Below, piece by piece: positions 7,144 through 62,947 of a DNA stretch of 64,000 nucleotides; positions within the stretch are counted from its first letter, which is position 1; the number at the start of each line of letters is the position of its first letter. The notes below the pieces were generated by a model that saw nothing but the letters and a program-made list of their open reading frames with translations, was not told the origin of the DNA and did no database searches. Location: positions 248,001-312,000 of IMG/VR virus record IMGVR_UViG_3300030673_000004; one strand, given 5' to 3'. The position numbers and the translations under genes are program-made.

Positions 7144-10100
7144 ATGCCTACCTTCAATAATATTCCAAGTAATATCCGTAAGAATCTGCTAACACCTATT
7201 GACCTTACTCAGGGCACGGCTTTGCTTCGTTCTAATCTAAGGAACATCGCTAACAGTTTGAGTAATGTAAATGGCTATAAATCATTTCTTCGTCAGGAAT
7301 TGCGTTCTCTTATGCATCCGCGTGAGAACGGCTTTCTTGGTTTGGTAGCTACAAATAATGTCAATGATATATCTATTGATTTAGTAGGTAACCCTATTCC
7401 AAAGATTATCTTTGGTGGTACCTATGTTGACATTGCTGTAGTTTTCAATCAGGATGCTTTTCGTATTGTTCTAGAAAAGGACGCATCTGCTGATGGTGCT
7501 ACTGTTGCCGGGTGGATATTGGCAGTTATTCCATACACACCTTTTGACAAGCTCACTTTTGGTGGGTTCTTAATCTATTTACTTCGCCGTATTGACGATA
7601 TCTTGTCTAAGACAGCAGCGCTAACTCGCTATGACAATAAGCTTGTTCGTCTTCCTGTAAATTCTGTAGGTATCGGCAGAAATGATAGAGCACCTGAGGC
7701 ACCAGATGAAGCTGCTATTGCACAACCACCTCAGCCTATAGAGGCACCTGAGGTAGCCCAAGCTCCTGCTCCAATAGAGAAACCTAAGCCCGAGCCTGTT
7801 ATTCCCGAGCAGCCTTTAGAGGATGAACCTGAAGTTGAGGATGTGGATACTAAGTCTAAGGAATATAAAGCAGCAGCTTCCTTTTCCTTGAGTCCTGATC
7901 TGCAAGAAAGTACAACACCGAAGCATCCTTATGATGCTGTTGGTAATTATGCTACTTTCTTTCAGGTGTTGAAATCTAACTTGAGCGCTGTGCGTAAAGA
8001 GCTAGCTAAATTATCTGGTAATACGTCAGCTAGTGTTAAACTTGATAAATCTGCTATTGTATTTACTGTACAAAATGTACGTGACCCTCAGCTTAGCCTA
8101 TTGACATCTATATCTTTGTTACCTATTGGTCAATTGAACCTGGGTAAGAACAAGGGACCTCGTTTTGAGGTCACCGGTGTATTAGATACTACTTATTATG
8201 ATGGTGAACTTGAGGAGGATGTCGGAAATGTTACACATGTATCTGTAGGAACGTGGAAATGGCTTGCAGAGTATGGTCGTTTGAATACTCTTCAACTAGT
8301 AAATAAAATCGTAGCCGATCTACTTGAAGCCACAACGCATGTTGAACATGCAGCTAACACAAACTCCGACGCTGCTATTGAGACAGAGTCTGAAGCTACA
8401 GCCGCGGATAAGACTAAGCATCCTAAATTGCCTACGGAGGTTAAAGTGCCCGAATCTAAGACTGAGGTTGAGACCTACAAGAAGAAGCTGGCCGAGATCC
8501 GCAAAAAGTCAGAGAAAAAGGGAACGGACACATCGGCCTATAACAAGATAGAGAATAAAACCCCTAAGGCGAAGACAGGTAAAGAATTATCATCTGAGAT
8601 TAATGTACCGGAAGTACCTGATTCTGGAGCAACTACTGTTGCTGACAAAATTAAAGATTCCTTAGAAGAAGCACCTAAAGTAAAACTTCCAAAGAATGCC
8701 GCTATTTTGCCTAAGGTTGTACAGGCTGCAGAAGAAAAGACACCGATTAAACTGCTGCCTTTGAATAAGTGGAATCATAAGAATGCGGATCATTACATAT
8801 ACCAGCCAGGTGGCCATGATTGGAATGGTAATTCATCAGTTATTTCAATCAACAGAGACCCTGATAGTAACTCCTGGTATGTTCGCTTGAACAATATATC
8901 AAAGCAGTTTAAGCAGCTAGTCGGTTCTTTTGTTGAGCCAGTAGCCTCCATTGTTAATGGTCAACTTGTAGATCATAACGGTCAAGGAGATGCCTTTGAA
9001 TCTCCTGAGGCTGCCTACGAGGGTTTACTCTCTGCTCTTAATACGGCTTTATATGGGAATGAGGCTACAGCTAAAGAGTTTGATGAGGACTACACGGCAG
9101 ACTCGCTAACAGACCTTGAACTGAATGACATGGATACAGATTTTGCTGACACCGACAAAAGTCTTGAGGATCCTAATGATGTCGTTGAGGGAGCTGCTGA
9201 CGGGGATGAAGCTGCATCGGAACCACCGGCAACACCAGCAGAGCCTGAGTCGCTTGAAACGTCTGATGGCGATGAAGAGAAGGTTGACATTAACACAGCC
9301 CTTAAATTCCGTGCAGTGCTGCCAGAAGATGCGGACGCTGAGCTCCCATCAAAACTCACGGAGCTGTTTGATGCTATATCTGATGGAAAAGTTCCCGAGG
9401 ATACCGTGATCTTTGTAACATCTGGCACAGGGTTGCGTACCTACACAGTAGGTAAGAATGAGGATGACTCGGTAAGTCTTCGGTGTGAGTACAGTGACGC
9501 TTTGATTCTTGATGGTATGGCGGGTACTCTAGATGACACTGAAGTAACAAAGACATTGGATAAAGCTAAGTCTGAGCAAGAAGATCGTTCTGCTAGTCTT
9601 CGCAACATTGATGAGATTTTTGATGCTTTTGAGACTATCGTTAAAGAAGACACTTTCGATCCCCAGAACTTCAATGACACTGCTGATGGTGATGACGGTG
9701 GCTATACCCTACCATCTGATCGTGATCGCTTAGATGCTGATTTAGCTGATTACGCTAAGAAGTCTTCAGATGATGCTGAAGCTGAAACGGATGAAGAGCC
9801 ATCAGAGGAAGAGGAGGCCGACGCCGCTTTTGCTTCTGCTCTGGTAGATTTGCTCCACTACAAGGAAAACCCGGTGGCTGCTGCTGCTGAGGTGAACGCT
9901 ATCATCCACGCTTTCTCTGGTGATGCTGAGGCGGCTTTCTCCTTGATTGAAGATAAGGGATTGTTTGCCAACGCATCTACATTCCCTGTCATGGAGACCA
10001 AGTTCTACAAACGTGGCGCTCGTCAGTATCCTGCGTATCACATGAGTGTGGCATCTACTACAGAGCCTACTCTAATGTTTGTTCCTCGGACAGGTGCTTA

Positions 10101-10277: not shown

Positions 10278-10393
10278 TTTAACCTCCTTTCTGTTGAAAT
10301 TATGCCGCGTGGCTTTTGTTGCCTTCCTGTTTGTGATTATAGTCCGTGTTTTCAAATAATCTCTTAGTATAATGCACACAACCAAGGTTGTTT

Positions 10394-11407
10394 ATGTCTC
10401 TGTTGTCTGATTTTCTACTAAAGCAAGGCGTTGTCTGTGCTGCTGTCACGCCTGAAGATTACAGAAAAGACCACGAAGCACCCGGTCCTGACTATGCGGC
10501 TCCTATGTATGACCTCGAAAAAATGTATCCTAAAGATGTCTATACAGGGCGCGGTCACGAATATGCTAATTCACCAGAAGAACGTGATGGGTTATATGCC
10601 GTATCTCGCACCCATAATAAACCCTGGGCACCCATAACTATATATCGTGCAGTACCCAAAGATATAAGTAGAGCTAAAATAAACGTTGGTGACTGGGTAA
10701 CTACATCCCGTGCGTATGCTAAAGAACATGGTGAAGCACACCTTGGTGGCCATGGGGCATATAAAATTCTGAAACTAATAGCACATGCCCGTGATCTGTA
10801 TACAGCCGGAGATTCTTTAGCTGAGTGGGGATATTATCCTCGTCCTGCTACACCCGAAGAGGAGCGCCAGGTACACGCAATCAGAGATAACAGTGCTCGG
10901 GAGAGATTGCAGCGAGCAGCAAATGGTGAGAAACTAATTTCAATTAATAAGTATCCCGATGATGCCTATTATGGTAAAGAGCCCGAGTTTTTTCAAAAAA
11001 TGTTAGACGATGAGTATCAAGCTACCACAGCGGTTGATACTATTCCAGATACAACGGATATAACGGCGGCTGTAAACTATCAAGACGATACAGACTATGC
11101 AACAGAGCATACGGAGTTAACAAAACTGGGTTTGATTTTTGGACAACCACAAAGTAAGAATGACGGTATCCAGGTAACCTATAAAGGTCATACATTACAG
11201 ATACGCCCTGAACCAAAAGAAGTGGAACTATCTCCTGCTGTACCAGCATCTCGTGGTCGAAAACATGTTCCTGCCTCTGTAAAAAATGTACCAGGTTATG
11301 CTGTTACCGGAATAACGCCAAACGGAAATGTTACTCATGTATTACGGGCTGAGGATGCTGATAAGTGGTTACGTGGATTAAAAGCTCATTGGGATTCTAA
11401 ACAATGA
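10394..11407 (+). CDS. ADP-ribosyltransferase-like domain protein
   Basis: IYRAVP...GDWVTTSRAYAKEHG...LAEWGY follows the R-S-E layout. Confidence 0.55.
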   Translation: MSLLSDFLLKQGVVCAAVTPEDYRKDHEAPGPDYAAPMYDLEKMYPKDVYTGRGHEYANSPEERDGLYAVSRTHNKPWAPITIYRAVPKDISRAKINVGDWVTTSRAYAKEHGEAHLGGHGAYKILKLIAHARDLYTAGDSLAEWGYYPRPATPEEERQVHAIRDNSARERLQRAANGEKLISINKYPDDAYYGKEPEFFQKMLDDEYQATTAVDTIPDTTDITAAVNYQDDTDYATEHTELTKLGLIFGQPQSKNDGIQVTYKGHTLQIRPEPKEVELSPAVPASRGRKHVPASVKNVPGYAVTGITPNGNVTHVLRAEDADKWLRGLKAHWDSKQ

Positions 11408-11908: not shown

Positions 11909-11937
11909 TTGACAAATGAACATTATTAATGTATATT
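11909..11937 (+). promoter_or_regulatory. sigma70-type promoter
   Basis: TTGACA-17-TATATT with TTAATG before the -10. Confidence 0.85.
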
Positions 11938-12222: not shown

Positions 12223-13497
12223 GTGGGCCAGTGGAAAGATGAGCGAGATACAATTTTGGCAGAAGCTGATCTTGATCCTAAGGTCCGCAAAGATCTGGAG
12301 TGTGTTTCCCTGGCGGATCCAACTTTTTTTGATATTCCTAGACTCCGTCCTTACTTTAAGTGGGATAGGACCTCATACCAGCAGCGGCTACATGTAACAT
12401 ATGTGACAGCTTTGTCTAATTGCAAAACACCAATTCAAGCAGCACGTATTCACGGAAGTATCATCAAGCATCTGCAGGAAAAGCTAAAGAGTGCGTCTTT
12501 GTACGCTGCGTTTCAGGACATTATCTCCGATCCCGGACATATTGACGCTACCTCGGTTAATTTCGAGATCGCTCTTGCCTTCCAGTGGGGATCTCAAATG
12601 TATGCTCCTGCGCACTACAAACCGGATCCTGCAGCCAGCGCACGTCGTTGGCGTGGAATCTACGGGGATTTAGATCCGTATAGAGATCAAACATTTGTTG
12701 CAGCACACGCAGTGATTACTACGGATGTCAATAATGCCACTGCGGCTGCTACCGCTGCTACCACAGCATCAGAAGAACCCTTGGCCAAGATTGATGTTCC
12801 TAAAGAGGGTGGTGATCGTCCTGCTTACTTGGCACAGTTGCGAGATGCCCTTAGAACTAATTTGGGTACCCAAGAAGATGCAACTGTTGCTGGATCCGCT
12901 GATGCTAACACACGTGCTGCGTTTGATACTCTGTGCGCAACAGGTAGTATGCCTACAGATACTACTCTATCCACCGTGGAACAGGGTATGCGTATCAGTG
13001 AACTGCTGAAAACAAGCTTGAATCGCCAAGAAACCGTTAGGCATCTAAAGAGCCTCGCGGAGTGTAATGATGGTGATAGCTGTCCTGCGGATCATGCACC
13101 GTGCCTGCTTGGTGCCTATGGTAGTCTTCGTTCTGGCATGCACAACCATTTCTGCTTGGACTCGGATGATCTTCTCTTTTTAGGGAGAGGTACTGCTCGT
13201 GGTGTTCTTTTCCCTGTTGGAAACGCTGTTCCTGGCGCACATTTCTCTGTAGATAGACCTGACACAGATAAAGTTACCCTGGAAGTATATCTGCTGCCGT
13301 TTAGTAGTCTAAAGAAACTGGATAAACTGTTAGGCTTTACAAGAGACGCAACTTCTCTATATACGAGACGTACTGTTTTAGCTACCATGGAGTCTGGTGA
13401 GTTGCTACTCACCCATGTCTATGAATATGACGGCAGAGCCTCTCGTGAGCCCATCCCAAGTGGGGATTGGTTTGAGTATAGGAAGTCACGCGAATAG
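12223..13497 (+). CDS. hypothetical protein
   Basis: 424-aa ORF with Ala/Thr-rich linker. Confidence 0.75.
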   Translation: MGQWKDERDTILAEADLDPKVRKDLECVSLADPTFFDIPRLRPYFKWDRTSYQQRLHVTYVTALSNCKTPIQAARIHGSIIKHLQEKLKSASLYAAFQDIISDPGHIDATSVNFEIALAFQWGSQMYAPAHYKPDPAASARRWRGIYGDLDPYRDQTFVAAHAVITTDVNNATAAATAATTASEEPLAKIDVPKEGGDRPAYLAQLRDALRTNLGTQEDATVAGSADANTRAAFDTLCATGSMPTDTTLSTVEQGMRISELLKTSLNRQETVRHLKSLAECNDGDSCPADHAPCLLGAYGSLRSGMHNHFCLDSDDLLFLGRGTARGVLFPVGNAVPGAHFSVDRPDTDKVTLEVYLLPFSSLKKLDKLLGFTRDATSLYTRRTVLATMESGELLLTHVYEYDGRASREPIPSGDWFEYRKSRE

Positions 13498-19956: not shown

Positions 19957-20015
19957 TTGACAAGCATACAAAATTAATGTATATTTGTTCTTGTCACCTC
20001 AACAAGGAGTTCAAC
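19957..20015 (+). promoter_or_regulatory. early promoter-leader cassette, copy 2
   Basis: TTGACAAGCATACAAAATTAATGTATATTTGTTCTTGTCACCTCAACAAGGAGTT. Confidence 0.9.
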
Positions 20016-28767: not shown

Positions 28768-28839
28768 GGAGCACAGACAGCATCGGCAGTAATCCAAAAT
28801 ATCACTGCCATACGAAACTATTTTGGAACTACCTAGCCT

Positions 28840-29034
28840 ATGTCAAGGACTACCGTAGTTTCTCTGCTAAGTGAGCAAATAGAACTACCCCAGGAGTTAA
28901 GCCCGTGTAGTAGCTATGTCCAGATTGAACAACCTGAAGAAGCTTTATTATTCAATACAGTAAATTTATCTAGTACATATATTAGCTACTTTAGTACCGC
29001 AGGTTACTCATTCCACGGAGCACTGAGTTCTTAA
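28840..29034 (+). CDS. motif array B, member 1
   Basis: N-terminal SLLSEQIELP. Confidence 0.6.
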   Translation: MSRTTVVSLLSEQIELPQELSPCSSYVQIEQPEEALLFNTVNLSSTYISYFSTAGYSFHGALSS

Positions 29035-29333
29035 TGTCAAAACGAGTTAATAGCAATACATTTTTAGGAATGCTTATTGACCCCTCATTAGCTTGCGATG
29101 TAAGCAACGATACAGAAAGGCACACGACTGAACATGTCGAGCGTCTCAGGGGACAAACAGCACACGTTGTTATGGCTGACGAGTTTAGTTGGGTTGATGA
29201 CTGTGCAGCATTTAGCGGTATTCGTGACGAACCTGTAGAAGAGTCTGTGATGCACCACCAAGAAACGCAAGCCGACCTGGATCGTTTCTACCAAATCATA
29301 TCACAATACTTTTCAAGGCAAACTCGCACATGA
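29034..29333 (+). CDS. motif array B, member 2
   Basis: TFLGMLIDPS; TAATG coupling. Confidence 0.65.
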   Translation: MSKRVNSNTFLGMLIDPSLACDVSNDTERHTTEHVERLRGQTAHVVMADEFSWVDDCAAFSGIRDEPVEESVMHHQETQADLDRFYQIISQYFSRQTRT

Positions 29334-29527
29334 AACTATCGACCACAAAATTACTAGGTATCCTACTAGTACCACATGAAGAAACGAATGAAGAAACGAA
29401 TGAAGTCTTTGACAGGATACGTGCTACATCAGCAACTCCAACTACTTGGGAGGAGCTACGGAGTATGTTTGTTAGGACAGAAGCTGTTCCACGCTTTATT
29501 ACTATTACAGGGGATTATCACAGATAA
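29330..29527 (+). CDS. motif array B, member 3
   Basis: KLLGILLVP; ATGA coupling. Confidence 0.6.
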   Translation: MKLSTTKLLGILLVPHEETNEETNEVFDRIRATSATPTTWEELRSMFVRTEAVPRFITITGDYHR

Positions 29528-37393: not shown

Positions 37394-37396
37394 TAC

Positions 37397-37564
37397 ATGA
37401 ATCAGACAGAACGCCCCCGAGTGAAAGGCGCAACTGAGTTACCTGATACGGTAGACTCACAAGCACTACAGAACTTTAGAGAAACATTGTTAAGCAAACA
37501 AAAGCTACTAGACATAGAGTTTCAACATATACTCAGCGATAATCTTGGGGATCTTTACGCATGA
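37397..37564 (+). CDS. small hypothetical protein (55 aa, not in ORF track)
   Basis: MNQTERP...GDLYA fills the gap and is ATGA-coupled to the next gene. Confidence 0.55.
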   Translation: MNQTERPRVKGATELPDTVDSQALQNFRETLLSKQKLLDIEFQHILSDNLGDLYA

Positions 37565-37812
37565 CAATATCAAGCTTCTGTACTGACTTAGTTACATTCT
37601 GCTTGATTCTGAATTTTGCGCATTTGTGCCTGTGCGATAGACCGCTAAAGTTTAGCCAAGTTGTAATAGTTAGCTTTACTTGGATTTTTGTTGGTCTGCT
37701 TTACAGGCATATGTTTGACAGCTACATAACATGGACATTTGCTATGGCTGCACTGTACTTACTTGTATGGCTAAAGGAACAACGCACAAACATCCTACAT
37801 AGAAAGAACTGA
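37561..37812 (+). CDS. membrane protein
   Basis: three hydrophobic segments. Confidence 0.6.
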   Translation: MTISSFCTDLVTFCLILNFAHLCLCDRPLKFSQVVIVSFTWIFVGLLYRHMFDSYITWTFAMAALYLLVWLKEQRTNILHRKN

Positions 37813-37815
37813 GAT

Positions 37816-38028
37816 ATGTCACATACACTGCAAGAAATCAAAGATGTCATGGATACTTACTGTCTAGAAAACAATGTAGAGATGTCCTCTAATTCCGTTG
37901 ATGCTATGGTAAACGTAGTTTCTGCGTGGGAGACGTTACTAAGTAGACTACAGTATGAAGATGACTGCATGAACAATACTAAGTTTATGGCTGTAGCGTC
38001 TTACTGCTTGGACAGACTAAAAATCTAA
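37816..38028 (+). CDS. hypothetical protein
   Basis: ORF tiling. Confidence 0.6.
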   Translation: MSHTLQEIKDVMDTYCLENNVEMSSNSVDAMVNVVSAWETLLSRLQYEDDCMNNTKFMAVASYCLDRLKI

Positions 38029-38098
38029 ATAGAAAAGCATCCTGTAGATAACAAGACGCTTTATCAAAAACGAGTAGAAGAAAACTTAGGTACTGTAA

Positions 38099-39352: not shown

Positions 39353-39363
39353 AACACGCCTCC

Positions 39364-39624
39364 TTAAACTACAACGGTGAGCATATTTGCCGGAATGGCA
39401 ATATGCGTATAAGGGTAAGTTGGACTAAGATCTTGTTCCAAGCGAATGATGTACGTGGTACAACCAGGAGCCTCTGCCATAGCAATACCTTGGATCTCCC
39501 CAGACATATGCTTGCCTTGAACGTCAAACGAGACATGTGTTCCTTGATGAAAACGCACAAACTCATACTCCTGTGTACTACGAATAGCACACAACTCTCG
39601 ACTTAGTTGTGGTCGTTCGGGCAT
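39364..39624 (-). CDS. small beta-barrel-like hypothetical protein
   Basis: downstream of - strand promoter at 39655-39683. Confidence 0.65.
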   Translation of the reverse strand: MPERPQLSRELCAIRSTQEYEFVRFHQGTHVSFDVQGKHMSGEIQGIAMAEAPGCTTYIIRLEQDLSPTYPYTHIAIPANMLTVVV

Positions 39625-39654
39625 TCTGCATACCCCTAGTTAAATTGTTACGTA

Positions 39655-39683
39655 AATATACATTATGGTTGTATCTTTGTCAA
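39655..39683 (-). promoter_or_regulatory. sigma70-type promoter
   Basis: TTGACA-17-TATATT on - strand. Confidence 0.8.
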
Positions 39684-39744
39684 GATGCGTTCGTAGCTTA
39701 AACAAACACCTCTTAGTACACCGAGGACACCTTTAAGGACAACC

Positions 39745-40167
39745 AGGTTCACACCAACAGCAGCCACAGAAAAATTAACGCTTGATCAAATCAATAAAGG
39801 GATTGAAGATCTACCCAGTAAAGATCGAGGCGAAGTATTTGATGGACACCATACGTTTGATGCTCTCTATGAGTACCGTTGTGTGTACAATGCAGCGTTG
39901 TTCAATCTCCTAGCAAGAGAACCTAGGTTTAAGGTTCAAAAGAGCTACAAACATAGCGACGGAAAGCCCTGCTTTGATAAAGATGACATGTTCATTGTGC
40001 AGGCAACACTACCACAAGGTCAAGTCAGTAACCATTACCACAAAGATGACTGGGATCTGTTCTGCTGTGAAGAGAAAGAACAAGCAGACGAGTGGGACGG
40101 ACACACACCGGAAGTAGCTTTGGAGAGACTTAGAAAATTCTGTGAATCCTTTGCAAAAATTAAGTAA
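39745..40167 (+). CDS. conserved phage protein (WDGH motif), start codon apparently AGG
   Basis: DGHHTF..LY.YR...KS.KHSDG...WDGHT; the frame extends upstream of GTG 39883 with no canonical start. Confidence 0.6.
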   Translation, partial: RFTPTAATEKLTLDQINKGIEDLPSKDRGEVFDGHHTFDALYEYRCVYNAALFNLLAREPRFKVQKSYKHSDGKPCFDKDDMFIVQATLPQGQVSNHYHKDDWDLFCCEEKEQADEWDGHTPEVALERLRKFCESFAKIK

Positions 40168-40176
40168 ATTATAGGC

Positions 40177-52000: not shown

Positions 52001-52089
52001 CACTAAAGTTTGTTAATGGCTCCGGCGCGTCAACCGTTGCAATGTCTCAAATGGCATTTGTTTCACTTGTTATTGAAGGAACAATCTAA
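46093..52089 (+). CDS. giant collagen-like fibre protein
   Basis: GAGGA RBS before ATG 46093; two G-X-(Q/T) tracts separated and capped by globular domains. Confidence 0.9.
46204..48585 (+). repeat. collagen-coding 9-bp period repeat, tract 1
   Basis: GGN-NNN-CAR/ACN period, about 795 codons. Confidence 0.95.
49096..51567 (+). repeat. collagen-coding 9-bp period repeat, tract 2
   Basis: same period, about 820 codons. Confidence 0.95.
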
Positions 52090-55013
52090 TGGCGTGTACA
52101 TATAGCTTTAGAAATACAACTACATCGGATATTACGCTAAATAACTCATTAGTTATCCAGGCACTATCTACAAAAACAGTATTCGATGTAGATACAATGA
52201 CAGTAACCGATGCTTGGTCAATCGAGCATTCTCTAGATGGAGCTGGATCAGGAACAACAGAGATAGCTCAATTACTATCTACAGGTAGTCTTGTATTTGT
52301 AATAGATGGTATAGATCAAACGTCTGATTCTTTTTATCCCGCATGGAAGACATTCTTTGGAAGCATCGTTGCTACAAATGTGGCTGAAAGTGTTCACGTT
52401 TTAGATCAAGCTGGGTATATAGGAACAGCAGCACCAAAAATAAAAACAAATGTAGTAACTACTGCTAATGCTGTAGATAGGACAGGATTTTTTATTGGCC
52501 CTGTCAATACAACGAATACACTTACAGTATCATCTACAGGTACATTAATATCACAGTGTGATCGACAACTACTATATTGCATGCAACCAGGTGTAACACC
52601 GGGTCATTGGTTTCAGTATATAGACAGTTACGGGTCAACTATGACACCGGCAAGTAATTCTGCACTGTCTACATCAGTTGTATCCTCTGGAAATCTAGCA
52701 GTCGCGATCACATTACTTGGTGATACAACATCGCACTACCCGTATGCCGGTGTAGCGTTTGACTTTACAGACAATGGGTCCGCAACAACTGCTAACAAAG
52801 CTACATTTAATGTATCTGCTTATACAGGAATAACAATTACTTATAAATCCTCAACTGTTATTAAACTACAACTAGAAGGTAATGCTGACTCCGACGGAGC
52901 TAACTGGTTCTACTCGCTGCCAATTGCATCAACATCTAGTACAGTGACACTGACATGGGCTCAGTTTTCACAACCCACATGGGTATCTACTACACAAACA
53001 CGAGCAATTCCTACAGCAGCACTAGCAAGTATCAAGTTCCAATATGATACAGCGCAAGCAGCAACTTCATTTACTGTATATAAAGTAGCATTTACAGGTA
53101 CAGGACCATTCATGGTCTCGCCTACAGCGCTCTCAAAAAAGTATAGCGTTCAAGCAGTACAACTTATAAATCAATGGTTTAATCAATTCTACTATGAAGA
53201 TACTACAGGAACATTAGGTAGAATAGCATGGGTTAGTGGATCTAATGTAGATACAACAATCACAGTATCTGAGGGTATCGGTTATGGCATGCTGTTAGCT
53301 ATAATAGCAGCAGCGTCACCCGGTGTTAGCGAGACATATCGTAAACGATTTGATCATATGTGGGCATTTTACCAGCTAAATAAAGATGGTAACGGCCTAA
53401 TGAATTGGAAGGTACAAAACTTTAATGCTACCGTGGTTGGTTCTGGTGCAGCACCGGACGGGGATCTTGATGTTGCTAAAGCACTACTTCTAGCATATGA
53501 ACGTTTCATGGATGTATCTTATTTAATAGCTGCTAGAAAACTAATGGCATCTATTTGGACATATGAAATTATATCAAAAGTAACAACGTCAGGAGGAACT
53601 AGATATCTTATTGCGCCGGGTGACAGCTACTCTAGTTTCTTCAATCCTAGCTATGCTAAGCTCGCAGCAATAAAATTATGTGCATATTATGATAATGTAA
53701 CTACACATTATTGGAATACTTTATATACAGATACTCTTTGGTTTCTAAATGCAAATCAAACATCAGTAGGGTCATCGTGCTTCTATCTACCATCTAATTG
53801 GTGCGATAAGAATGGTACACCTGTAATAGGTAACTCATCACTAGGCTTTGGCTGGGATGCTTGTCGAGTATTATACCACGTAGCAGAAGCATTCTACTGG
53901 TTTGGTGATTCTGCAGCACGTGCATATCTACAAACAATAGCAAGTACTTCATTAGCCACAACACTCATATCGTCTCCAATGAGTTTACAGCTAACAATTA
54001 AACCGGATGGAACATCAGGTCAATCATATAACTCAACATCTTCTACATGGTCTGCTACAGCTACAAGTGACTACAATACAGCCGCTATAGGAACTATTCT
54101 AACAGCACTTACAACAACATCAACATTCACAGAAGCGCAAGCAGAATCTGTTCTAGACACAATTCTTGCATATACAACAGAAAATACAGACTACTTTAGA
54201 TTAGCACTTAAGGCTTTTATACTTTCTGTTATTACTGGAGTATCTACCAGATATGCCAAAGATGCTGGATCGGCATCAGCTATAGCATACATAGTAAATG
54301 TTGGCGCTCCTTATGGATCACAAACAGGGAATGCCCAACTAGCTATAATGGCCGATGGTAGTGGTGTTCAAGTAAGAACATACTCTAACGGGACATGGAC
54401 GACAAGTTCAATTAGTGGCTCTCAAGGAGCACAAGGAAACCAGGGGCCTCAAGGTACATCCGGTGGACCTCAGGGTAACCAAGGTACAACAGGAGCACAA
54501 GGGCCTCAAGGTACGGCTGGTGTGCAAGGAGTACCGGGCGCTCAAGGTAGTCAGGGAAACCAGGGTAATCAAGGACCCGCTAATGGTGCCCAAGGAGCTA
54601 CTGGAGCACAAGGGGCTCAGGGACCTCAAGGATTTCAAGGTGCCCAAGGAATCCAGGGAGCAGGAGTACAGGGGGCTCAAGGACCTCAAGGTAACCAAGG
54701 CCCTGCTAATGGGCCACAAGGAACTACAGGATCTCAGGGAAACCAAGGAGATCAAGGTGTAATTGGCACACAAGGAGTACCGGGCGCTCAAGGTAGTCAG
54801 GGAAACCAGGGTAATCAAGGAGCTAAAGGAGCACAAGGTACTCAGGGAGTACAGGGCACAACGGGAGCTCAGGGAGTACAAGGTTCAATAGGAACCCAAG
54901 GTGCGACGGGAGCACAAGGTACTCAGGGTAATCAAGGATTCGCGAGCATTGTAGTTGTCTCAACTATGCCAAGTACTCCAGCAGCAAACACACTTTATAT
55001 AGTGACAACCTAG
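52089..55013 (+). CDS. CBM11-like + glycoside hydrolase family 8 + collagen-like fibre protein
   Basis: VSEGIGYGML, GLMNW, AAPDGDLDVAKALLLA, FNPSY, GWDACR (GH8); upstream YAGVAFDF..YTGITITYKS..LTWAQFSQP.W; G-X-Q tail; ends MPSTPAANTLYIV. Confidence 0.8.
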   Translation: MACTYSFRNTTTSDITLNNSLVIQALSTKTVFDVDTMTVTDAWSIEHSLDGAGSGTTEIAQLLSTGSLVFVIDGIDQTSDSFYPAWKTFFGSIVATNVAESVHVLDQAGYIGTAAPKIKTNVVTTANAVDRTGFFIGPVNTTNTLTVSSTGTLISQCDRQLLYCMQPGVTPGHWFQYIDSYGSTMTPASNSALSTSVVSSGNLAVAITLLGDTTSHYPYAGVAFDFTDNGSATTANKATFNVSAYTGITITYKSSTVIKLQLEGNADSDGANWFYSLPIASTSSTVTLTWAQFSQPTWVSTTQTRAIPTAALASIKFQYDTAQAATSFTVYKVAFTGTGPFMVSPTALSKKYSVQAVQLINQWFNQFYYEDTTGTLGRIAWVSGSNVDTTITVSEGIGYGMLLAIIAAASPGVSETYRKRFDHMWAFYQLNKDGNGLMNWKVQNFNATVVGSGAAPDGDLDVAKALLLAYERFMDVSYLIAARKLMASIWTYEIISKVTTSGGTRYLIAPGDSYSSFFNPSYAKLAAIKLCAYYDNVTTHYWNTLYTDTLWFLNANQTSVGSSCFYLPSNWCDKNGTPVIGNSSLGFGWDACRVLYHVAEAFYWFGDSAARAYLQTIASTSLATTLISSPMSLQLTIKPDGTSGQSYNSTSSTWSATATSDYNTAAIGTILTALTTTSTFTEAQAESVLDTILAYTTENTDYFRLALKAFILSVITGVSTRYAKDAGSASAIAYIVNVGAPYGSQTGNAQLAIMADGSGVQVRTYSNGTWTTSSISGSQGAQGNQGPQGTSGGPQGNQGTTGAQGPQGTAGVQGVPGAQGSQGNQGNQGPANGAQGATGAQGAQGPQGFQGAQGIQGAGVQGAQGPQGNQGPANGPQGTTGSQGNQGDQGVIGTQGVPGAQGSQGNQGNQGAKGAQGTQGVQGTTGAQGVQGSIGTQGATGAQGTQGNQGFASIVVVSTMPSTPAANTLYIVTT

Positions 55014-57003: not shown

Positions 57004-57345
57004 CTACAGAATTTGGCCAGCATTAAGAGCATCTGCGGCTCGCAGTAAGGACTGTAAAAGTTTCCAGACATAAGCGTAGCTATTGAAGATTCGATCACGA
57101 TAAGATACATGCGGATCATAGCTGATTACTGCACCGATCAGTTCCTGGAGCTCTTCGAGGGCTACCTGTGGCCCATCAAATGTCTCTTTTGTCACGATAT
57201 CTATCACACTACCATCGTGGTTACCTCGCGATCCATGTATGAAGTATTTATACTTAGTGGCTAAGTTATCCTGAACAGTGATTATCTGCGTTCCACCATC
57301 GCGCAGGCCATCCAGACGTGTCAACTCAAGCGTGTGTGCTGTCAT
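57004..57345 (-). CDS. hypothetical protein
   Basis: 113-aa ORF with LRDGGT motif. Confidence 0.65.
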   Translation of the reverse strand: MTAHTLELTRLDGLRDGGTQIITVQDNLATKYKYFIHGSRGNHDGSVIDIVTKETFDGPQVALEELQELIGAVISYDPHVSYRDRIFNSYAYVWKLLQSLLRAADALNAGQIL

Positions 57346-57379
57346 AAAGAACTATTTACAACAAAATACGACGAAGACC

Positions 57380-57408
57380 TTGACACCCATACAGTTTTGA
57401 AGTATATT
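57380..57408 (+). promoter_or_regulatory. sigma70-type promoter for the large ncRNA
   Basis: TTGACA-17-TATATT. Confidence 0.85.
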
Positions 57409-57414
57409 TTATTC

Positions 57415-58181
57415 ATCGGCACGACGGCACGACGAGAGGCCGGAGCCCAACCGCAGCCACATAAGGGGCGGTTTTTTACGAGAAGAAGAGTAACTGAGGT
57501 TACTCACAAACAAACAAACAAAATCACCTGCTGTCAAGACGGCTGGTGCCTGACTTCAACCATGGAGAGCATGAAAATGCATTGGCCGTAGCTACTTAAC
57601 AAAACAACACCTATGAGCTCTTAACATAAACATGTAAAGGAGACTTTCGGATATGCCATTCCTTTAGCTACTTAACAAAACAACACCTATGAGCCTTCAT
57701 CATGAGGTTCCACGAAAACCGAGTGATGCCTGACAAAAAACCTAGGGAGGAACTATACAAATGCCGCCTACGTGATCTTACTTTGTGTGTTTTTTGTTTT
57801 TCAACGAATAGAAACTTGAGCTAGTTGATGAGATAAACCAGTTGTTGAAAGGTGCAAAACCAATGCGATGTAGGTAAAAATACCCAGCGTTACTTAGGTT
57901 GCTAACGAGAGTTAAAAATGACTAGGATGTTGCTCCAGCATTAGCCGAAACCTAGTGAGGGAGCACCTCCAACCTCTACTGAGAAAGTCAAACGTTCAGC
58001 CGATTTTCAGTAGTTGTAAGTTTAATAATTGAAACGTGCATATGTCCTCGTGGCTTCTCAGGACTGGCATTTGCTAAAATAAATTGCCCGAGAAGTAAAA
58101 GCCGCATAAGATACTTACAAGTAGTTTAATAGCTCTTATACAGCTATTAAACCATAACGGTAAGCTAGCTTAGCGGCTTTT
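57415..58181 (+). ncRNA. large ornate ncRNA candidate (~770 nt), family unknown
   Basis: largest ORF-free gap in the window, own promoter, at least 10 stems including pseudoknots, 3' closing stem with U-rich tail. Confidence 0.7.
57589..57694 (+). repeat. perfect 30-bp direct repeat x2 around a 46-nt insert
   Basis: TAGCTACTTAACAAAACAACACCTATGAGC at 57589-57618 and 57665-57694. Confidence 0.95.
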
Positions 58182-58201
58182 GCATTTTATAAACATTTAA
58201 C

Positions 58202-58230
58202 GTGACATACATACAAAATTAATGTATATT
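58202..58230 (+). promoter_or_regulatory. sigma70-type promoter (cassette-family spacer)
   Basis: GTGACA-TACATACAAAATTAATG-TATATT. Confidence 0.8.
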
Positions 58231-58276
58231 GTATTCAAGCAAGAGCTAAACAAATAAGCACAAGGAGCACAGGCCA

Positions 58277-58981
58277 GTGCCACAAGAAAATCCCGGCAAG
58301 CGTGTCTACATCAATATCCTGAACAAGTGCAATGAGCGATGTCCCTTCTGCTGTATGTACAGTGGACCTGAGAAAAACACGATCATGCCGTTTTCTACAT
58401 TTGAAGATATTCTCCAGAACGAACGTACAGGCCCTCTTGTTGAAGTTCAACTTGAGGGAGGTGAGCCTTTACTGCACCCAAATCTATACCTGTTCTTAGA
58501 ATATATCCACTACCTAGATGTACCTAAGATCATCATTACCACAAATGGTATTCTTCTGCGCAAACATCTGCCTAAACTGACGGAGTTTGCAAGCAGAACA
58601 CAAACAACTCTCGTGATTAAAGTTAGTGTAAACTCGCACCTCCTCAAGCAGCCGACTAAACTTGGCATGGATCACTTTGAGCAGCTCAAAGATCTATACC
58701 TCGCTACCGAATTCCTCCCGAATGTAATCATCCTGTTCAATGTTCGACTGCGAGCAAATCATGAAGATGATGATATTGTAGAAGGGCTGCGCAGAACAGA
58801 CTTGCTGAAACACTCCAATGTCTTCCAGCTACAATCTTACGGAAGATACTCAGAACAAACCGAATATGAAAAGCCTGTAATCGTACAGAACATTAAACAA
58901 TGGAACATCTACTCCAGTGATGGTATCTGTTTCGGGCAGGATCTAGTTGCGAGAAGTAATCATGAAAAGGATGTGAGGTAA
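58277..58981 (+). CDS. radical SAM protein
   Basis: CNERCPFC, GGEP, TTNG. Confidence 0.85.
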   Translation: MPQENPGKRVYINILNKCNERCPFCCMYSGPEKNTIMPFSTFEDILQNERTGPLVEVQLEGGEPLLHPNLYLFLEYIHYLDVPKIIITTNGILLRKHLPKLTEFASRTQTTLVIKVSVNSHLLKQPTKLGMDHFEQLKDLYLATEFLPNVIILFNVRLRANHEDDDIVEGLRRTDLLKHSNVFQLQSYGRYSEQTEYEKPVIVQNIKQWNIYSSDGICFGQDLVARSNHEKDVR

Positions 58982-60029
58982 TGGTAACTATGAAATTTGC
59001 ACCACTACGTGAAGCTCGCCAGGAATCACACAATGTTGAGGAATACAAACTGCTCCCATTCATGTTTGAGTCAGGACCACGCCAGGTCTACAGTAACATG
59101 AATCTGTCCATCATGATTGATGATTACTGCAATGCGAACTGTCAATTCTGTGTAGCTCAACTACGCTACGAAAACCGAGCTAAGCAGTACCAGAAGCCCA
59201 AGATTCACAATGATGACACCTATTTCGCACGTCTGGATGAGATGCTTTCGTTTCTGGCACCGCTCAATCCTAGCATCAGCATCACGGGTGGCGAACCCAG
59301 CAAGTCCCGCAGGCTCCCGCAGATTCTTGAACTTAGCAATAAGCACGGTTACCGCAAGCGGACCCTGACGACGAATGGCAGTGGACTCTTTGATGAACTG
59401 AACGGCAAAACTATGCTGCAGCACATCATTGATAACAAGTTCCAGCACTTGAATATCAGCAAAGCCCACTATGATGAAGAGACCAATCGGCGTATCATGC
59501 AATATGATGCTAGTACCGGATATTGCTCGAATGAAATACTGAGCCGAATTGCAACTTATGCCCTGGCAAACAATCTGCGTCCTCGTATGAGTTGTGTGCT
59601 TCTCAAGAGTGGTATATCTACCCTGGAAGACATGATTCATTATATGGAGTTCTATCAGAGTCTGGGTATGGACAATGTCATCTTTCGTGAGCTCATGGAT
59701 TATGACAAAGTTTCTATGGACAACGCCCCAAAACTAGCGTTCAATCAGGAAAACAAAGTGTATCTTGCTGATCTGTGGAAGCAGCTTGACGGAGATACTC
59801 GGTTCACTCCTGTGCGCAACCTGATGGGCTACTACTATTATGTAGAAGTCTACAAGTATCAGAACGTAGACACATGTGTTCTGAAGGTGCCAACCTTGTC
59901 AAGCTGTACAACGAAAAGGCTAAGCACCCGGAAGTTGTCTACGAGATGGTGTTTCATCCCAATGGCAACCTTAATGGCAGTTGGGTTGATTCCGAAGATA
60001 TTCTTCAGAAATACCAGGGAACTCTGTAA
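58981..60029 (+). CDS. radical SAM protein with apparent frameshift near 59870
   Basis: CNANCQFC, TGGEP, TTNG; a natural-looking C-terminus lies in another frame ending TAA 60029 just before the next RBS. Confidence 0.75.
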
Positions 60030-60040
60030 AAGGACAATAC

Positions 60041-60232
60041 ATGTTTATTGCTGTTGGGCCGTATGCAGAAAACACAAGCGATCAGTTACCCGATGTCATC
60101 ATTGATGTGTGCTCTGATCTTACCTATCAAGAACGCTGCAGGTATACAGAATTAATTGCAGACGCAATCAATAGAGGACTACCTAAAAACTTGTCCAGGG
60201 AAGACTTACAGCCAAAAGTACAAAAAGTTTAA
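60041..60232 (+). CDS. hypothetical protein
   Basis: AAGGA RBS. Confidence 0.6.
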   Translation: MFIAVGPYAENTSDQLPDVIIDVCSDLTYQERCRYTELIADAINRGLPKNLSREDLQPKVQKV

Positions 60233-61761: not shown

Positions 61762-62862
61762 ATGCCTGACACCAACGTAAAAGAACTAACTGAAACTGCT
61801 CTAGACTCTAATTTAGAGTCGCAGAGCACAGACCGCATCTCTCAGTACAAGCTCCTTCTGGGAGATAAGATTGTAAAAGAGATCAGCCAATCCTTGGGTG
61901 AAGAAGGTACCAAAAAGTTTCTTGAATTACACGCAAAGTTTGACAGCCTATTAGACCAGCACCCAGAACTTGACATCATTAACGTTGTATCTGTTGATGA
62001 CATAGGTGAGTACTCATCCTTCACAGAATATACAGCATTTTTACGTAAGCTGTACACTAAACTAAATGCTACAGCCAATTCAGCTAATAACAAAGCAGAT
62101 AAAAATAGTGCTGTTAATCAGATTGTAGATGTCTTAAGTGATATGCTTGATCTAGCAGGTCAATCAGGTGACACAGCCGTAGCCTCCGCATCATCAGCAG
62201 CATTTATAGAAAAGATCTTTGCGCCACTAATCAAAGTACCACTCACTACTCGTGAGAAAACAATTCTACCAAAGACCTACCCGGACTATGTTGAAATTGC
62301 TCGCTATGTTCATAGCAGAGCAGAACAGGCAGAATTTAATACCTGGCTATTAAATAAGTTAAATGGTATTGTGAAATGTGGACTAGAGCGGTTAGCCGAC
62401 CAAAAGAATATCATGGAAGAAACCCGTGATACATTAGGACCCAAAGACTACCTAGTTGAGCTTCAGAAGTATCTAATGGACAACGAATGGATTGGATACA
62501 GCAAAAATGAAGTAAAAGAAGCTATAGCAGCCACAAAAGAAATCACACGTGCTGGTTATACCACAAATGTTGATATAGCCAAAGGAAAACAAGTAATACA
62601 GCTAGACATTGATGCACTCAAGAGCCATGCATACTTGTATCTAGGTGCCACGCTTGACTCCGAGCTACGTAAAGCCATTTATCGGCTTGCTGACAGTGTC
62701 AACAAGAACTACAATATTGAGGGCGGTGCCGCTGGTATGGATGTGCTTATGGCAGCTTCCGCTGTCTATATTCAGGATTTCGCTCGCCAGTGGCTCACAA
62801 AGCTGATCAAGGTGTTCAACGACATTGATTTTGATGCTGAAAAGACAAGCAAGAAGCCTTGA
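61762..62862 (+). CDS. hypothetical helical protein
   Basis: GAGGGG RBS, 366 aa. Confidence 0.8.
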   Translation: MPDTNVKELTETALDSNLESQSTDRISQYKLLLGDKIVKEISQSLGEEGTKKFLELHAKFDSLLDQHPELDIINVVSVDDIGEYSSFTEYTAFLRKLYTKLNATANSANNKADKNSAVNQIVDVLSDMLDLAGQSGDTAVASASSAAFIEKIFAPLIKVPLTTREKTILPKTYPDYVEIARYVHSRAEQAEFNTWLLNKLNGIVKCGLERLADQKNIMEETRDTLGPKDYLVELQKYLMDNEWIGYSKNEVKEAIAATKEITRAGYTTNVDIAKGKQVIQLDIDALKSHAYLYLGATLDSELRKAIYRLADSVNKNYNIEGGAAGMDVLMAASAVYIQDFARQWLTKLIKVFNDIDFDAEKTSKKP

Positions 62863-62947
62863 CATAAGCACAAAAATAAACTATATTGTATCAACCTGCC
62901 TATTTTAGGACGGTTGACCATCCAAGGGCACCGAAAGGTGCCTTTTT
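62859..62947 (+). promoter_or_regulatory. promoter plus structured leader ending in a terminator-like hairpin
   Basis: TTGACA-17-TATATT; TCAACC/GGTTGA stem; GGGCACC-GAAA-GGTGCC-TTTTT. Confidence 0.7.

Follow-up and report, generated by a model that had tools for sequence, protein, structure and literature searches.

A conserved promoter-to-terminator unit in uncultivated jumbo phages with a candidate array of four-codon reading frames and a covarying 3' domain

What is the function of a 931-nucleotide (nt) interval in a jumbo phage genome that lacks any sizeable gene? The stretch analysed here, referred to throughout as the window, comprises 64,000 nt (64 kb; positions 248,001 to 312,000) of the IMG/VR record IMGVR_UViG_3300030673_000004, and its source contig is a 375.5-kb sequence from an uncultivated jumbo phage, near-identical contigs of which turn up in several samples. 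The interval lies at 57346-58276 and ranks first in the window amongst gaps without an open reading frame (ORF) of at least 80 amino acids (aa), in agreement with an earlier note, made from the sequence alone, that had read positions 57415-58181 as an ornate, multi-pseudoknot non-coding RNA with its own promoter. Comparison with related phages shows a candidate RNA built from two modules: an array of four-codon frames led by Shine–Dalgarno (SD) sequences (two to three ending in UAG followed by CUACUU, and one reading AUG-Pro-Pro-Thr-UGA), and a folded 3' domain.

Several features point to transcription of the region in its own right. The promoter previously placed at 57380-57408 (TTGACA-17-TATATT) was recovered in a consensus scan as a strong sigma-70-type sequence, with A57415 as the likely transcription start, and the pairing of AAAAGCCGC with GCGGCTTTT, which had been read by eye as closing the structure, is supported by the relatives and forms the base of an intrinsic terminator. 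The boundaries are as follows.

57380..57408, plus strand: promoter P1, TTGACA-17 nt-TATATT, matching 11/12 consensus positions, with hexamers invariant in all four lineages
58097..58190, plus strand: intrinsic terminator, a long hairpin with base AAAAGCCGC/GCGGCTTTT and then TTTTGCATTTTAT, from alignments and hand comparison
58202..58230, plus strand: promoter P2, ahead of the radical-SAM operon, a copy of the TTGACAnnnATACAAAATTAATGTATATT promoter family that is kept along with the RNA block

Because P1 is followed by a hairpin with a U-tract that stands before P2, the region is, as predicted from its signals, a promoter-to-terminator transcription unit of ~775 nt (about 57415-58190, plus strand). 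The stem base of the terminator shows compensatory change between lineages (GCCGC/GCGGC versus GTCCC/GGGAC and GTCCTG/CGGGAC) and its tail, CTTTTGCATTTTATA, is invariant. The proposal of an RNA with its own promoter can thus be extended to an independent unit with a terminator, conserved among related phages.

The block made up of P1, the RNA, the terminator and P2 was found in just three further lineages of related jumbo phages, represented by contigs L011/L012, L014/L015 and L041. The first four of these jumbo-phage contigs belong to a 64%-identity cluster of the radical-SAM protein encoded downstream, and both synteny and a gene-free gap of 970 nt are kept in them. The L041 lineage was reached via a conserved 366-aa protein encoded nearby; the homologous block is present (nhmmer E = 3e-52), although its context differs, the minus-strand gene being absent and the downstream genes encoding an LRR protein and a non-orthologous radical-SAM enzyme. 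P2 is also found in L041, even though the downstream genes differ there. The block is not present in the more distant phages L035-L040, whose 366-aa protein is 67-70% identical, nor in L004-L009 and L055, which were reached through radical-SAM and methyltransferase proteins. A search with five exact conserved-block patterns against IMG/VR, JGI metagenomes and GTDB genomes returned this phage only, plus chance matches (L017-L034, L044-L054 and L056-L058, judged with nhmmer or by inspection). Neither the region itself nor the surrounding 24 kb had a BLAST match among about 50,000 GenBank phages.

How strong is the evidence for selection? In the neighbouring 366-aa gene, identity at fourfold degenerate sites is down to 34-39% between the three deep lineages, so these sites are saturated. 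Because neutral sites are saturated between these lineages, the identical 9-17-nt blocks in the gap can be taken to be under selection. Blocks common to all lineages comprise both promoters, AAATGCCGCCYACGTGA, TAGCTACTT (two or three times), GAAAGG..CC(A)ATGC, GYCAAACGNTCA, GANACGTG, GACTG, TAAAAG and CTTTTGCATTTTATA. Taken together, the comparison shows that purifying selection evidently acts on the unit in this small jumbo-phage clade. The family is a narrow one, confined to one clade of uncultivated phages, so that the statistics and the generality of the finding are both restricted.

In the 5' half, conservation is highest at ribosome-binding sites and at four-codon frames that change only synonymously, which speaks against the earlier label of non-coding RNA. 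Three such SD-led frames (mini-ORFs) are present in the window, together with a direct repeat; the earlier note was silent on both.

57577-57591, plus strand: unit 1, MHWP (ATG CAT TGG CCG TAG), with SD GGAGAG at 57564-57569, a 7-nt spacer and CTACTT at 57592-57597
57653-57667, plus strand: unit 2, MPFL (ATG CCA TTC CTT TAG), with SD AAGGAG at 57637-57642, a 10-nt spacer and CTACTT at 57668-57673
57761-57775, plus strand: mini-ORF 3, MPPT (ATG CCG CCT ACG TGA), with SD GGGAGG at 57745-57750, a 10-nt spacer and two consecutive proline codons
57589-57618 and 57665-57694, plus strand: two exact 30-nt direct repeats, each beginning at the UAG of a mini-ORF (0/100 shuffles with such a match)

Lining up the units on the repeat TAGCTACTT, we compared copies from all lineages. 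The units ending in UAG encode MHWP (57577-57591) and MPFL (57653-57667) in the window, MPFL and MPFL in L041, and MHWP, MHFG and MHFG in L011, L012 and L014. Their anatomy is shared: an SD, an ATG (GTG in one copy), three sense codons, a TAG and the invariant CTACTT, with an aromatic residue at position 3 in every unit. The frame is four codons long in every copy whilst the flanking sequence varies between lineages, and in 17/18 copies the SD (GGAG, GAGG or AGGAGG) lies 7-13 nt upstream of the start. The exception is unit 2 of L041, where the SD is 19 nt from the ATG of MPFL and 7 nt from an in-frame upstream ATG (MKYPMPFL). The third frame, ATG CCG CCY ACG TGA, is found once per lineage with an SD of its own around which the sequence differs, and the 17-nt block containing it, AAATGCCGCCYACGTGA, is kept in all lineages.

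Substitutions in the orthologous copies are few and consistently conservative. MHWP recurs in L011, L012 and L014 with CAT changed to CAC, L012 also having GTG for ATG; both copies of MPFL in L041 have TTT for TTC; and the sole change in the MPPT block is CCT to CCC in L041. In each of these five substitutions (CAT/CAC, TTC/TTT twice independently, CCT/CCC and ATG/GTG) the peptide or the start is kept. SD-led ORFs of 15 nt are also in clear excess, with 3 found in 776 nt against about 0.09 expected from their rate in the rest of the window. The distance from the UAG to the next ATG is 64, 83 or 84 nt, so that frame is not preserved, and products of read-through or +1 frameshifting past the UAG were rejected as candidates, frame and product being unconserved. 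Because neither the downstream frame nor the read-through and +1 products are conserved, the frames do appear to end at the UAG. From these patterns we infer that ribosomes do translate the mini-ORFs and that their translation is what matters. The case also teaches, for similar scans, that a stretch free of ORFs need not be untranslated.

The units may not act singly. Folding predictions pair the SD of unit 2 with a pyrimidine tract that lies past unit 1, and in local folds from all lineages a pyrimidine tract 15-25 nt past each stop pairs with the SD of the next unit. Because of this pairing, and because the SDs are predicted to be mostly paired overall (see below), the folds suggest that translation of the mini-ORFs is gated or coupled rather than constitutive. 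In each UAGCUA (57589-57594, 57665-57670 and their equivalents in relatives), the stop and the next three bases form a palindrome, and the copies pair together over 6-7 base pairs (bp) in every predicted fold, a pairing that could link units within one RNA or between RNA molecules. As regards codon choice, the genes of the phage use no amino acids less often than His and Trp, and CCG and ACG count among its minor codons; by phage codon usage, from which that of the host may differ, the UAG units have no two consecutive codons that are identical or clearly rare, whereas MPPT has the invariant CCG CCY. Termination is weak at a UAG followed by C, and release is poor from peptides that end in Pro or Gly.

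The second module is the 3' half. Compared with shuffles, the unit folds with greater stability (z is -4.1 over 776 nt and -5.4 over the 273 nt at its 3' end), as would be expected of the structured RNA proposed earlier. The minus strand, however, is likewise stable (z = -2.2 and -4.6), so stability alone cannot choose the strand; the plus strand is assigned because of the promoter and terminator, the ribosome-binding sites and the G-U pairs in the covarying helices, which would be A-C mismatches on the other strand. The following elements were identified.

57976..58013 (57976-85 with 58004-13), plus strand: hairpin H3, a 10-bp stem and an 18-nt loop with the invariant GYCAAACGNTCA (57987-57998); nine pairs tested, 100% of cells paired, 5/9 changed on both sides
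58038-58044 with 58068-58074, plus strand: stem S1; eight pairs, 94% of cells paired, 7/8 double-changed
58054-58059 with 58090-58095, plus strand: H-type pseudoknot between CTTCTC (in the S1 loop) and GAGAAG (outside S1); six pairs, 100% paired, 4/6 double-changed, TGCCTA/TAGGCA in the L011 lineage
57931..57965, plus strand: hairpin H2, TGCTCC (57931-57936) with GGAGCA (57960-57965), from hand comparison
57799-57805 with 57844-57850, plus strand: helix Pa, plausible, paired 7/7, 8/8 and 7/9 in the lineages
57844-57866, plus strand: conserved block GTTGAAAGG..AACCAATGC, overlapping the 3' side of Pa

MAFFT alignments mis-registered these helices, and a covariance model trained on them repeated the error. 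The model was rebuilt from the lineage of L011, L012 and L014 only, the other lineages being then aligned to it, and with the rebuilt model the window and L041 were the only other matches in 119 kb (E = 5e-6 and 3e-5). The alignment was thus fitted to H3 and S1; the pseudoknot, absent from the alignment model, was added to the counted structure. Over H3, S1 and the pseudoknot, 98% of cells in the rebuilt alignment hold standard pairs and 16/26 pairs have changed on both sides, a count that rests on four distinct sequences. None of 500 shuffles (0/500) reached the observed values, and sliding the 3' partner by 1-3 columns left at most 1 pair with a double change. Helices were assigned outside 57776-57930, with the plausible Pa as the exception.

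The homologues therefore do covary, but on a plan simpler than the multi-pseudoknot architecture first envisaged: one pseudoknot and the covarying helices stand, whereas both long-range helices and the second pseudoknot fail in relatives. Of the pairings originally read by eye, CTACTGAGAA/TTTTCAGTAG (57976/58004) corresponds to H3, and GCTTCTC/GAGAAGT (58053/58090) is a true pseudoknot. TGCTCC/GGAGCA is also a genuine pairing, albeit as an ordinary hairpin stem in relatives rather than a pseudoknot: at the H2 position, a stem of 6-8 bp (up to about 11 bp by hand extension) is formed from four unrelated sequences in the four lineages, and slid controls pair poorly. TTTCAAC/GTTGAAA (57799/57844), here Pa, is plausible, although its 3' side is nearly invariant and so weakly informative, and there is an alternative partner in the L011 lineage. 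CCTACGT/ATGTAGG (57767/57868) is kept in one other lineage only and not in the remaining ones. Relatives do not conserve GAGTAAC/GTTACTC (57488/57499), ACTAGG/CCTAGT (57921/57951), the GTCCT/AGGAC hairpin or the long-range TTGTAAGT/ACTTACAA and CAAATGCC/GGCATTTG, the local stem S1 covarying instead of the last of these. Although L011 and L014 share 99% identity in the neighbouring gene, several compensatory changes separate them in H3 and the H2 stem has been wholly replaced, which suggests an unusually fast turnover of the H2 and H3 helices. Whatever the mechanism, the covarying 3' domain, with its supported pseudoknot and invariant 12-nt loop, represents a new structured RNA.

Could the RNA belong to a known family? 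No Rfam family matched at the gathering score anywhere in the window, leaving the RNA uncatalogued, and permissive searches gave no GOLLD, ROOL or OLE match at E <= 10 in 57200-58400 or, at E <= 5, in its homologues from L011 and L041. Permissive searching of the region and two relatives yielded only sub-threshold miRNA, snoRNA and CRISPR-DR noise, the weak CRISPR-DR matches in relatives lying below threshold and on the opposite strand. ARAGORN detected no tRNA in the window or in 12 related loci. The suggestion that this is a distant member of the GOLLD/ROOL type thus found no backing: covariance models failed to match even at E <= 10, and tRNA genes are lacking nearby. The alternative offered with it, a new class of structured phage RNA, is reasonable for the 3' half, given its covarying helices and the lack of an Rfam match.

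Nor is a hidden gene apparent. Stop-to-stop pieces of at least 33 aa gave two sub-threshold chance matches in Pfam (E 0.015 and 0.13) and none in PHROGs. When the lineages were compared in six frames, peptide matches arose in all frames and on both strands, the pattern expected of nucleotide conservation alone, with no hidden ORF. Stop-codon reassignment was ruled out, as TAG ends 14/74 ordinary genes of the window. A CRISPR mini-array, type III toxin–antitoxin repeats, a diversity-generating retroelement template and an antisense target within the window were also considered, and none fits.

The genes bordering the gap, and the leader of the predicted RNA, are as follows.

57004-57345, minus strand: gene for a 113-aa protein, upstream of the gap
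57415..57560, plus strand: variable 5' leader with local hairpins, from alignments; its sequence is unconserved and a hairpin precedes a conserved GGTGCC..AC in each lineage
58277-58981 and 58981-60105: radical-SAM gene pair, downstream of the gap

In the leader, the hairpin CACC-GCTGTC/GACGGC-GGTG (57525-57548) of the earlier note keeps its position in relatives, although the leader sequence is not kept. An AACCGC..GCGGTT hairpin followed by T6 at 57448-57477, 35-60 nt past the predicted RNA start, is found in the window lineage only and looks like an early intrinsic terminator or attenuator. Downstream, the radical-SAM protein has hundreds of relatives at about 50% identity, on contigs that have the two-gene cassette without a long upstream gap. 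The cassette (about 225-235 aa plus about 345-375 aa) has 213 metagenome relatives at E <= 1e-5, and its proteins show generic radical-SAM family matches only. Elsewhere (L004, L005, L006 and L008) it adjoins Amidoligase_2 or VWA and PTH2 genes, without the RNA; in relatives, Amidoligase_2-like genes adjoin baseplate genes. L041 carries a 433-aa TnpB/Cas12f-like gene (7677-8978; OrfB_IS605, Cas12f1-like_TNB) directly upstream of its 366-aa gene; no such TnpB/Cas12f-like gene is present in the window.

P1, like P2, belongs to the extended promoter family TTGACAnnnATACAAAATTAATGTATATT, which recurs in intergenic regions on both strands of the phage and is probably the early promoter class of the phage, or else has a common operator between its two hexamers. 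Besides P1, copies in the window lie at 722-750, 11909-11937, 19957-19985, 58202-58230 and 62859-62887 on the plus strand, and at 41744-41716, 41346-41318, 39683-39655 and about 38951-38921 on the minus strand. Three other gaps of 700-820 nt without an ORF of at least 80 aa are present (39353-40176, 28768-29526 and 37394-38098), two of them in a divergently transcribed region holding several copies of the motif. Annotations elsewhere (52089-55013, 12223-13497 and 10388-11407 in the window, and L003 from 8685 onward) include a tail-fibre protein with a GH8 glycoside hydrolase domain and collagen repeats, two proteins with GGACT/gamma-glutamyl cyclotransferase domains, one with a ParB C-terminal domain and, in relatives, the Amidoligase_2-like genes noted above. 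Most large proteins of the phage have no PHROG match, so it appears to be very distant from described phages.

What, then, might the RNA do? The reading we favour, tentatively, is that it constitutes a multi-unit trap for ribosomes, tRNAs or release factors that modulates host translation, with the 3' domain as a stabiliser and possibly as a second functional module. On this proposal, host RNA polymerase would transcribe the RNA early in infection; ribosomes would load on the mini-ORFs, form three peptide bonds and then either come to a weakly terminating stop (UAG-C, in many cases preceded by Pro or Gly) or stall at Pro-Pro. Much like CreT toxins and the bar minigenes of phage lambda, the RNA would thus tie up ribosomes, particular tRNAs or release factors unproductively, with the pyrimidine tracts coupling or gating the units by pairing with the next SD. 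The folded 3' domain would mainly guard the RNA from decay, as the hairpin does in CreT, and its invariant H3 loop may give it a second function; the net effect would be that host translation is modulated or shut off. The proposal is supported by the SD spacing, the fixed four-codon length, the exclusively synonymous changes and the excess of SD-led ORFs over expectation.

A number of observations weigh against a trap. The peptides differ between lineages (MPFL versus MHFG), with no single tRNA obvious as the target, and apart from CCG and ACG the codons of the mini-ORFs are not strikingly rare in the phage's own genes. In MPPT the Pro codons precede Thr and then the stop, whereas in the characterised toxin the stop comes directly after Pro-Pro. 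The SDs are mostly paired in global folds, with a probability of being unpaired of 0.07-0.33 for the three SDs of the window and that of unit 1 in L041. The phage, too, needs translation, and no compensating tRNA genes were found in the window or the related loci. Stabilisation by itself would not call for a covarying domain of ~400 nt with a 12-nt invariant loop, and all comparisons draw on four lineages only, three of them deeply separated.

A possible, if less than likely, alternative is that function resides in the structured 3' domain, which would bind a protein, serve as a scaffold or act as an antisense RNA by way of the invariant H3 loop and the GAAAGG..AACCAAUGC block, with the mini-ORFs as mere accessories in cis; ribosomes on them would protect the 5' half, rich in A and C and poor in G, against Rho and RNases, or set the timing of folding in the 3' domain. 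Strong covariation in H3, S1 and the pseudoknot is consistent with this, as is the retention of H2 and the terminator, and loop and junction sequences are invariant despite the saturation of neutral sites. The 5' half is A-rich and slightly C-over-G, like a Rho loading site, and the sequestration of SDs by upstream pyrimidine tracts suggests regulated rather than maximal translation. Yet no partner is evident, complements of the conserved loops were not found in the window and no Rfam family matches; moreover, plain shielding needs no fixed four-codon length, no fixed UAG plus CUACUU and no invariant Pro-Pro frame. Quite unlikely, in our estimation, is a long regulatory leader in which translation of, or stalling on, the mini-ORFs decides read-through of the terminator at 58097-58190 into the radical-SAM genes. 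The block does lie directly upstream of a radical-SAM-containing operon in all lineages, and leader peptides with stall-prone codons are a classical attenuation device. What tells against it is the conservation of a second full promoter, P2 (58202-58230), between terminator and operon, a distance of 320-580 nt from the mini-ORFs to the terminator, the non-orthology of the downstream genes in L041 to those of the window and the wide distribution of the same radical-SAM pair without this region. No conserved antiterminator pairing that could replace the terminator was found, and with P2 conserved past the terminator and no conserved terminator/antiterminator alternation, the region does not fit the plan of a leader-peptide transcription attenuator.

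Might the peptides themselves be the products? That MHWP, MHFG, MPFL and MPPT, or processed forms of them, serve as intracellular signals, inhibitors or leaderless substrates or cofactors for the downstream radical-SAM enzymes seems improbable, even though substitutions in the mini-ORFs are synonymous only, position 3 of the UAG units is always aromatic, radical-SAM genes lie downstream in every lineage and a precedent for a very short translated gene exists in mccA of microcin C, which has seven codons. Both the peptides and the radical-SAM enzymes differ between lineages, no RRE or SPASM signature reached its family cut-off, and the conserved UAG plus CUACUU and the 3' domain would be left unexplained. 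We know of no ribosomal natural product as short as four residues, and the tetrapeptides would, if this were true, be the shortest ribosomally made precursors known. Least credible of all is that the region is no RNA but the remnant of a gene, or an element acting at the level of DNA, for example an origin or iterons to which a protein binds. Two to three copies of an exact 9-30-nt repeat at a spacing of 76-101 nt would suit such an element, but neither an AT-rich dip nor a switch in skew is seen, Pfam and PHROGs give no credible match to any stop-to-stop piece, and peptide matches across lineages are equal across frames and strands. Promoter, SDs, start codons and terminator are all conserved, and the compensatory helix changes, G-U pairs included, are not predicted by constraint at the DNA level.

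How does the proposed trap compare with known systems? With the GOLLD, ROOL and OLE RNAs (Rfam; PMC12286853) the phage RNA has in common a length of hundreds of nucleotides, carriage by phages, multiple helices and a pseudoknot. It differs in having no covariance-model match (E <= 10) and no neighbouring tRNA genes, in being structured over ~400 nt only, in the translated-looking mini-ORFs of its 5' half and in its restriction to one small phage clade. Because the defining covariance-model match was tested for and did not appear, the RNA is, on the models, not a member of any of the three. The autoregulatory site of the RF2 gene (prfB) reads CUU UGA CUA with an SD-like element before it. Unit 2 of the window and both units of L041 read CUU UAG CUA C, with the same Leu codon, the same weak stop-plus-C context and following bases, and an SD-like element upstream. 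The phage stop, however, is the RF1-specific UAG and not UGA, other units have CCG or GGU before the stop and would be unable to slip, and the +1 products are unconserved. By analogy, the resemblance to the RF2 site hints that weak termination matters.

Closer parallels are found amongst elements that act through unproductive translation. That phages can carry such elements is shown by the bar minigene of phage lambda, which consists of AUG AUA and a stop codon. CreT toxins require an SD, an efficient start, a mini-ORF of up to 6 codons in which two special codons stand side by side, and a hairpin that stabilises the RNA; those of haloarchaea have two consecutive rare codons, a strong SD and a stem-loop, and act by tRNA sequestration (PMC8501985). 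Peptidyl-tRNA drop-off, which is controlled by RRF and RF3, is concentrated at the di- to tetrapeptide stage, bulky residues stabilising short peptidyl-tRNAs on the ribosome (PMC10192219). In the phage RNA, the 15-nt Pro-Pro frame is accompanied by two or three frames with many His, Trp and Phe codons, closed by a weak stop that only RF1 reads. The phage RNA resembles the haloarchaeal CreTs and lambda bar in having very short frames, within the range of 2-6 codons, that would be efficiently initiated; the effect of those systems comes about through tRNA sequestration or peptidyl-tRNA drop-off, and a downstream hairpin is needed there for RNA stability. A strong SD and a start precede a mini-ORF of at most about 6 codons in three units of the window and in three or four in relatives, and covarying helices and the long terminator hairpin provide stem-loops 3' of the mini-ORFs. 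Differences are equally plain: in place of two consecutive rare codons (AGA or AUA), the phage frames have codons for His, Pro, Trp, Phe and Pro/Gly/Leu that are not clearly rare, and the units are arrayed, with a fixed UAG in a fixed 6-nt 3' context.

The CreT of the type I-F CreTA system of Pseudomonas aeruginosa consists of a 15-nt mini-ORF that has two proline codons in succession, with an SD before it and, for RNA stability, a hairpin, and it arrests translation in vitro (bioRxiv 10.64898/2026.06.02.729485). It too is a small, independently transcribed RNA, with translation-dependent activity, and the canonical SD, the 15-nt Pro-Pro frame and the stable downstream structure all recur in the phage. 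In CreT, however, the stop comes directly after Pro-Pro in a single mini-ORF on a small RNA, whereas in the phage Pro-Pro follows the AUG and precedes Thr-UGA, in an RNA of 775 nt with three to four putative mini-ORFs and a large covarying 3' domain. CreT is repressed by the CreA guide with Cascade and sits in a cas locus; no cas genes were found among the neighbours of the phage RNA, the sole repeats nearby are the mini-ORF units, and none is CRISPR-like. With no CreA, no cas context, an arrayed organisation, a fixed UAG plus CUACUU and a large covarying domain, the phage RNA is not a CreTA module. By analogy, it may nevertheless act like a CreT or a bar minigene. Were this so, it would be the first phage-borne array of translation-trapping mini-ORFs, a principle otherwise met in CRISPR-guarded CreT toxins and lambda bar, and a jumbo phage could manipulate the ribosome, tRNA or release-factor pool of its host by RNA rather than protein, with the fixed UAG plus CUACUU as a natural handle on stop-codon context and the termination of very short nascent chains.

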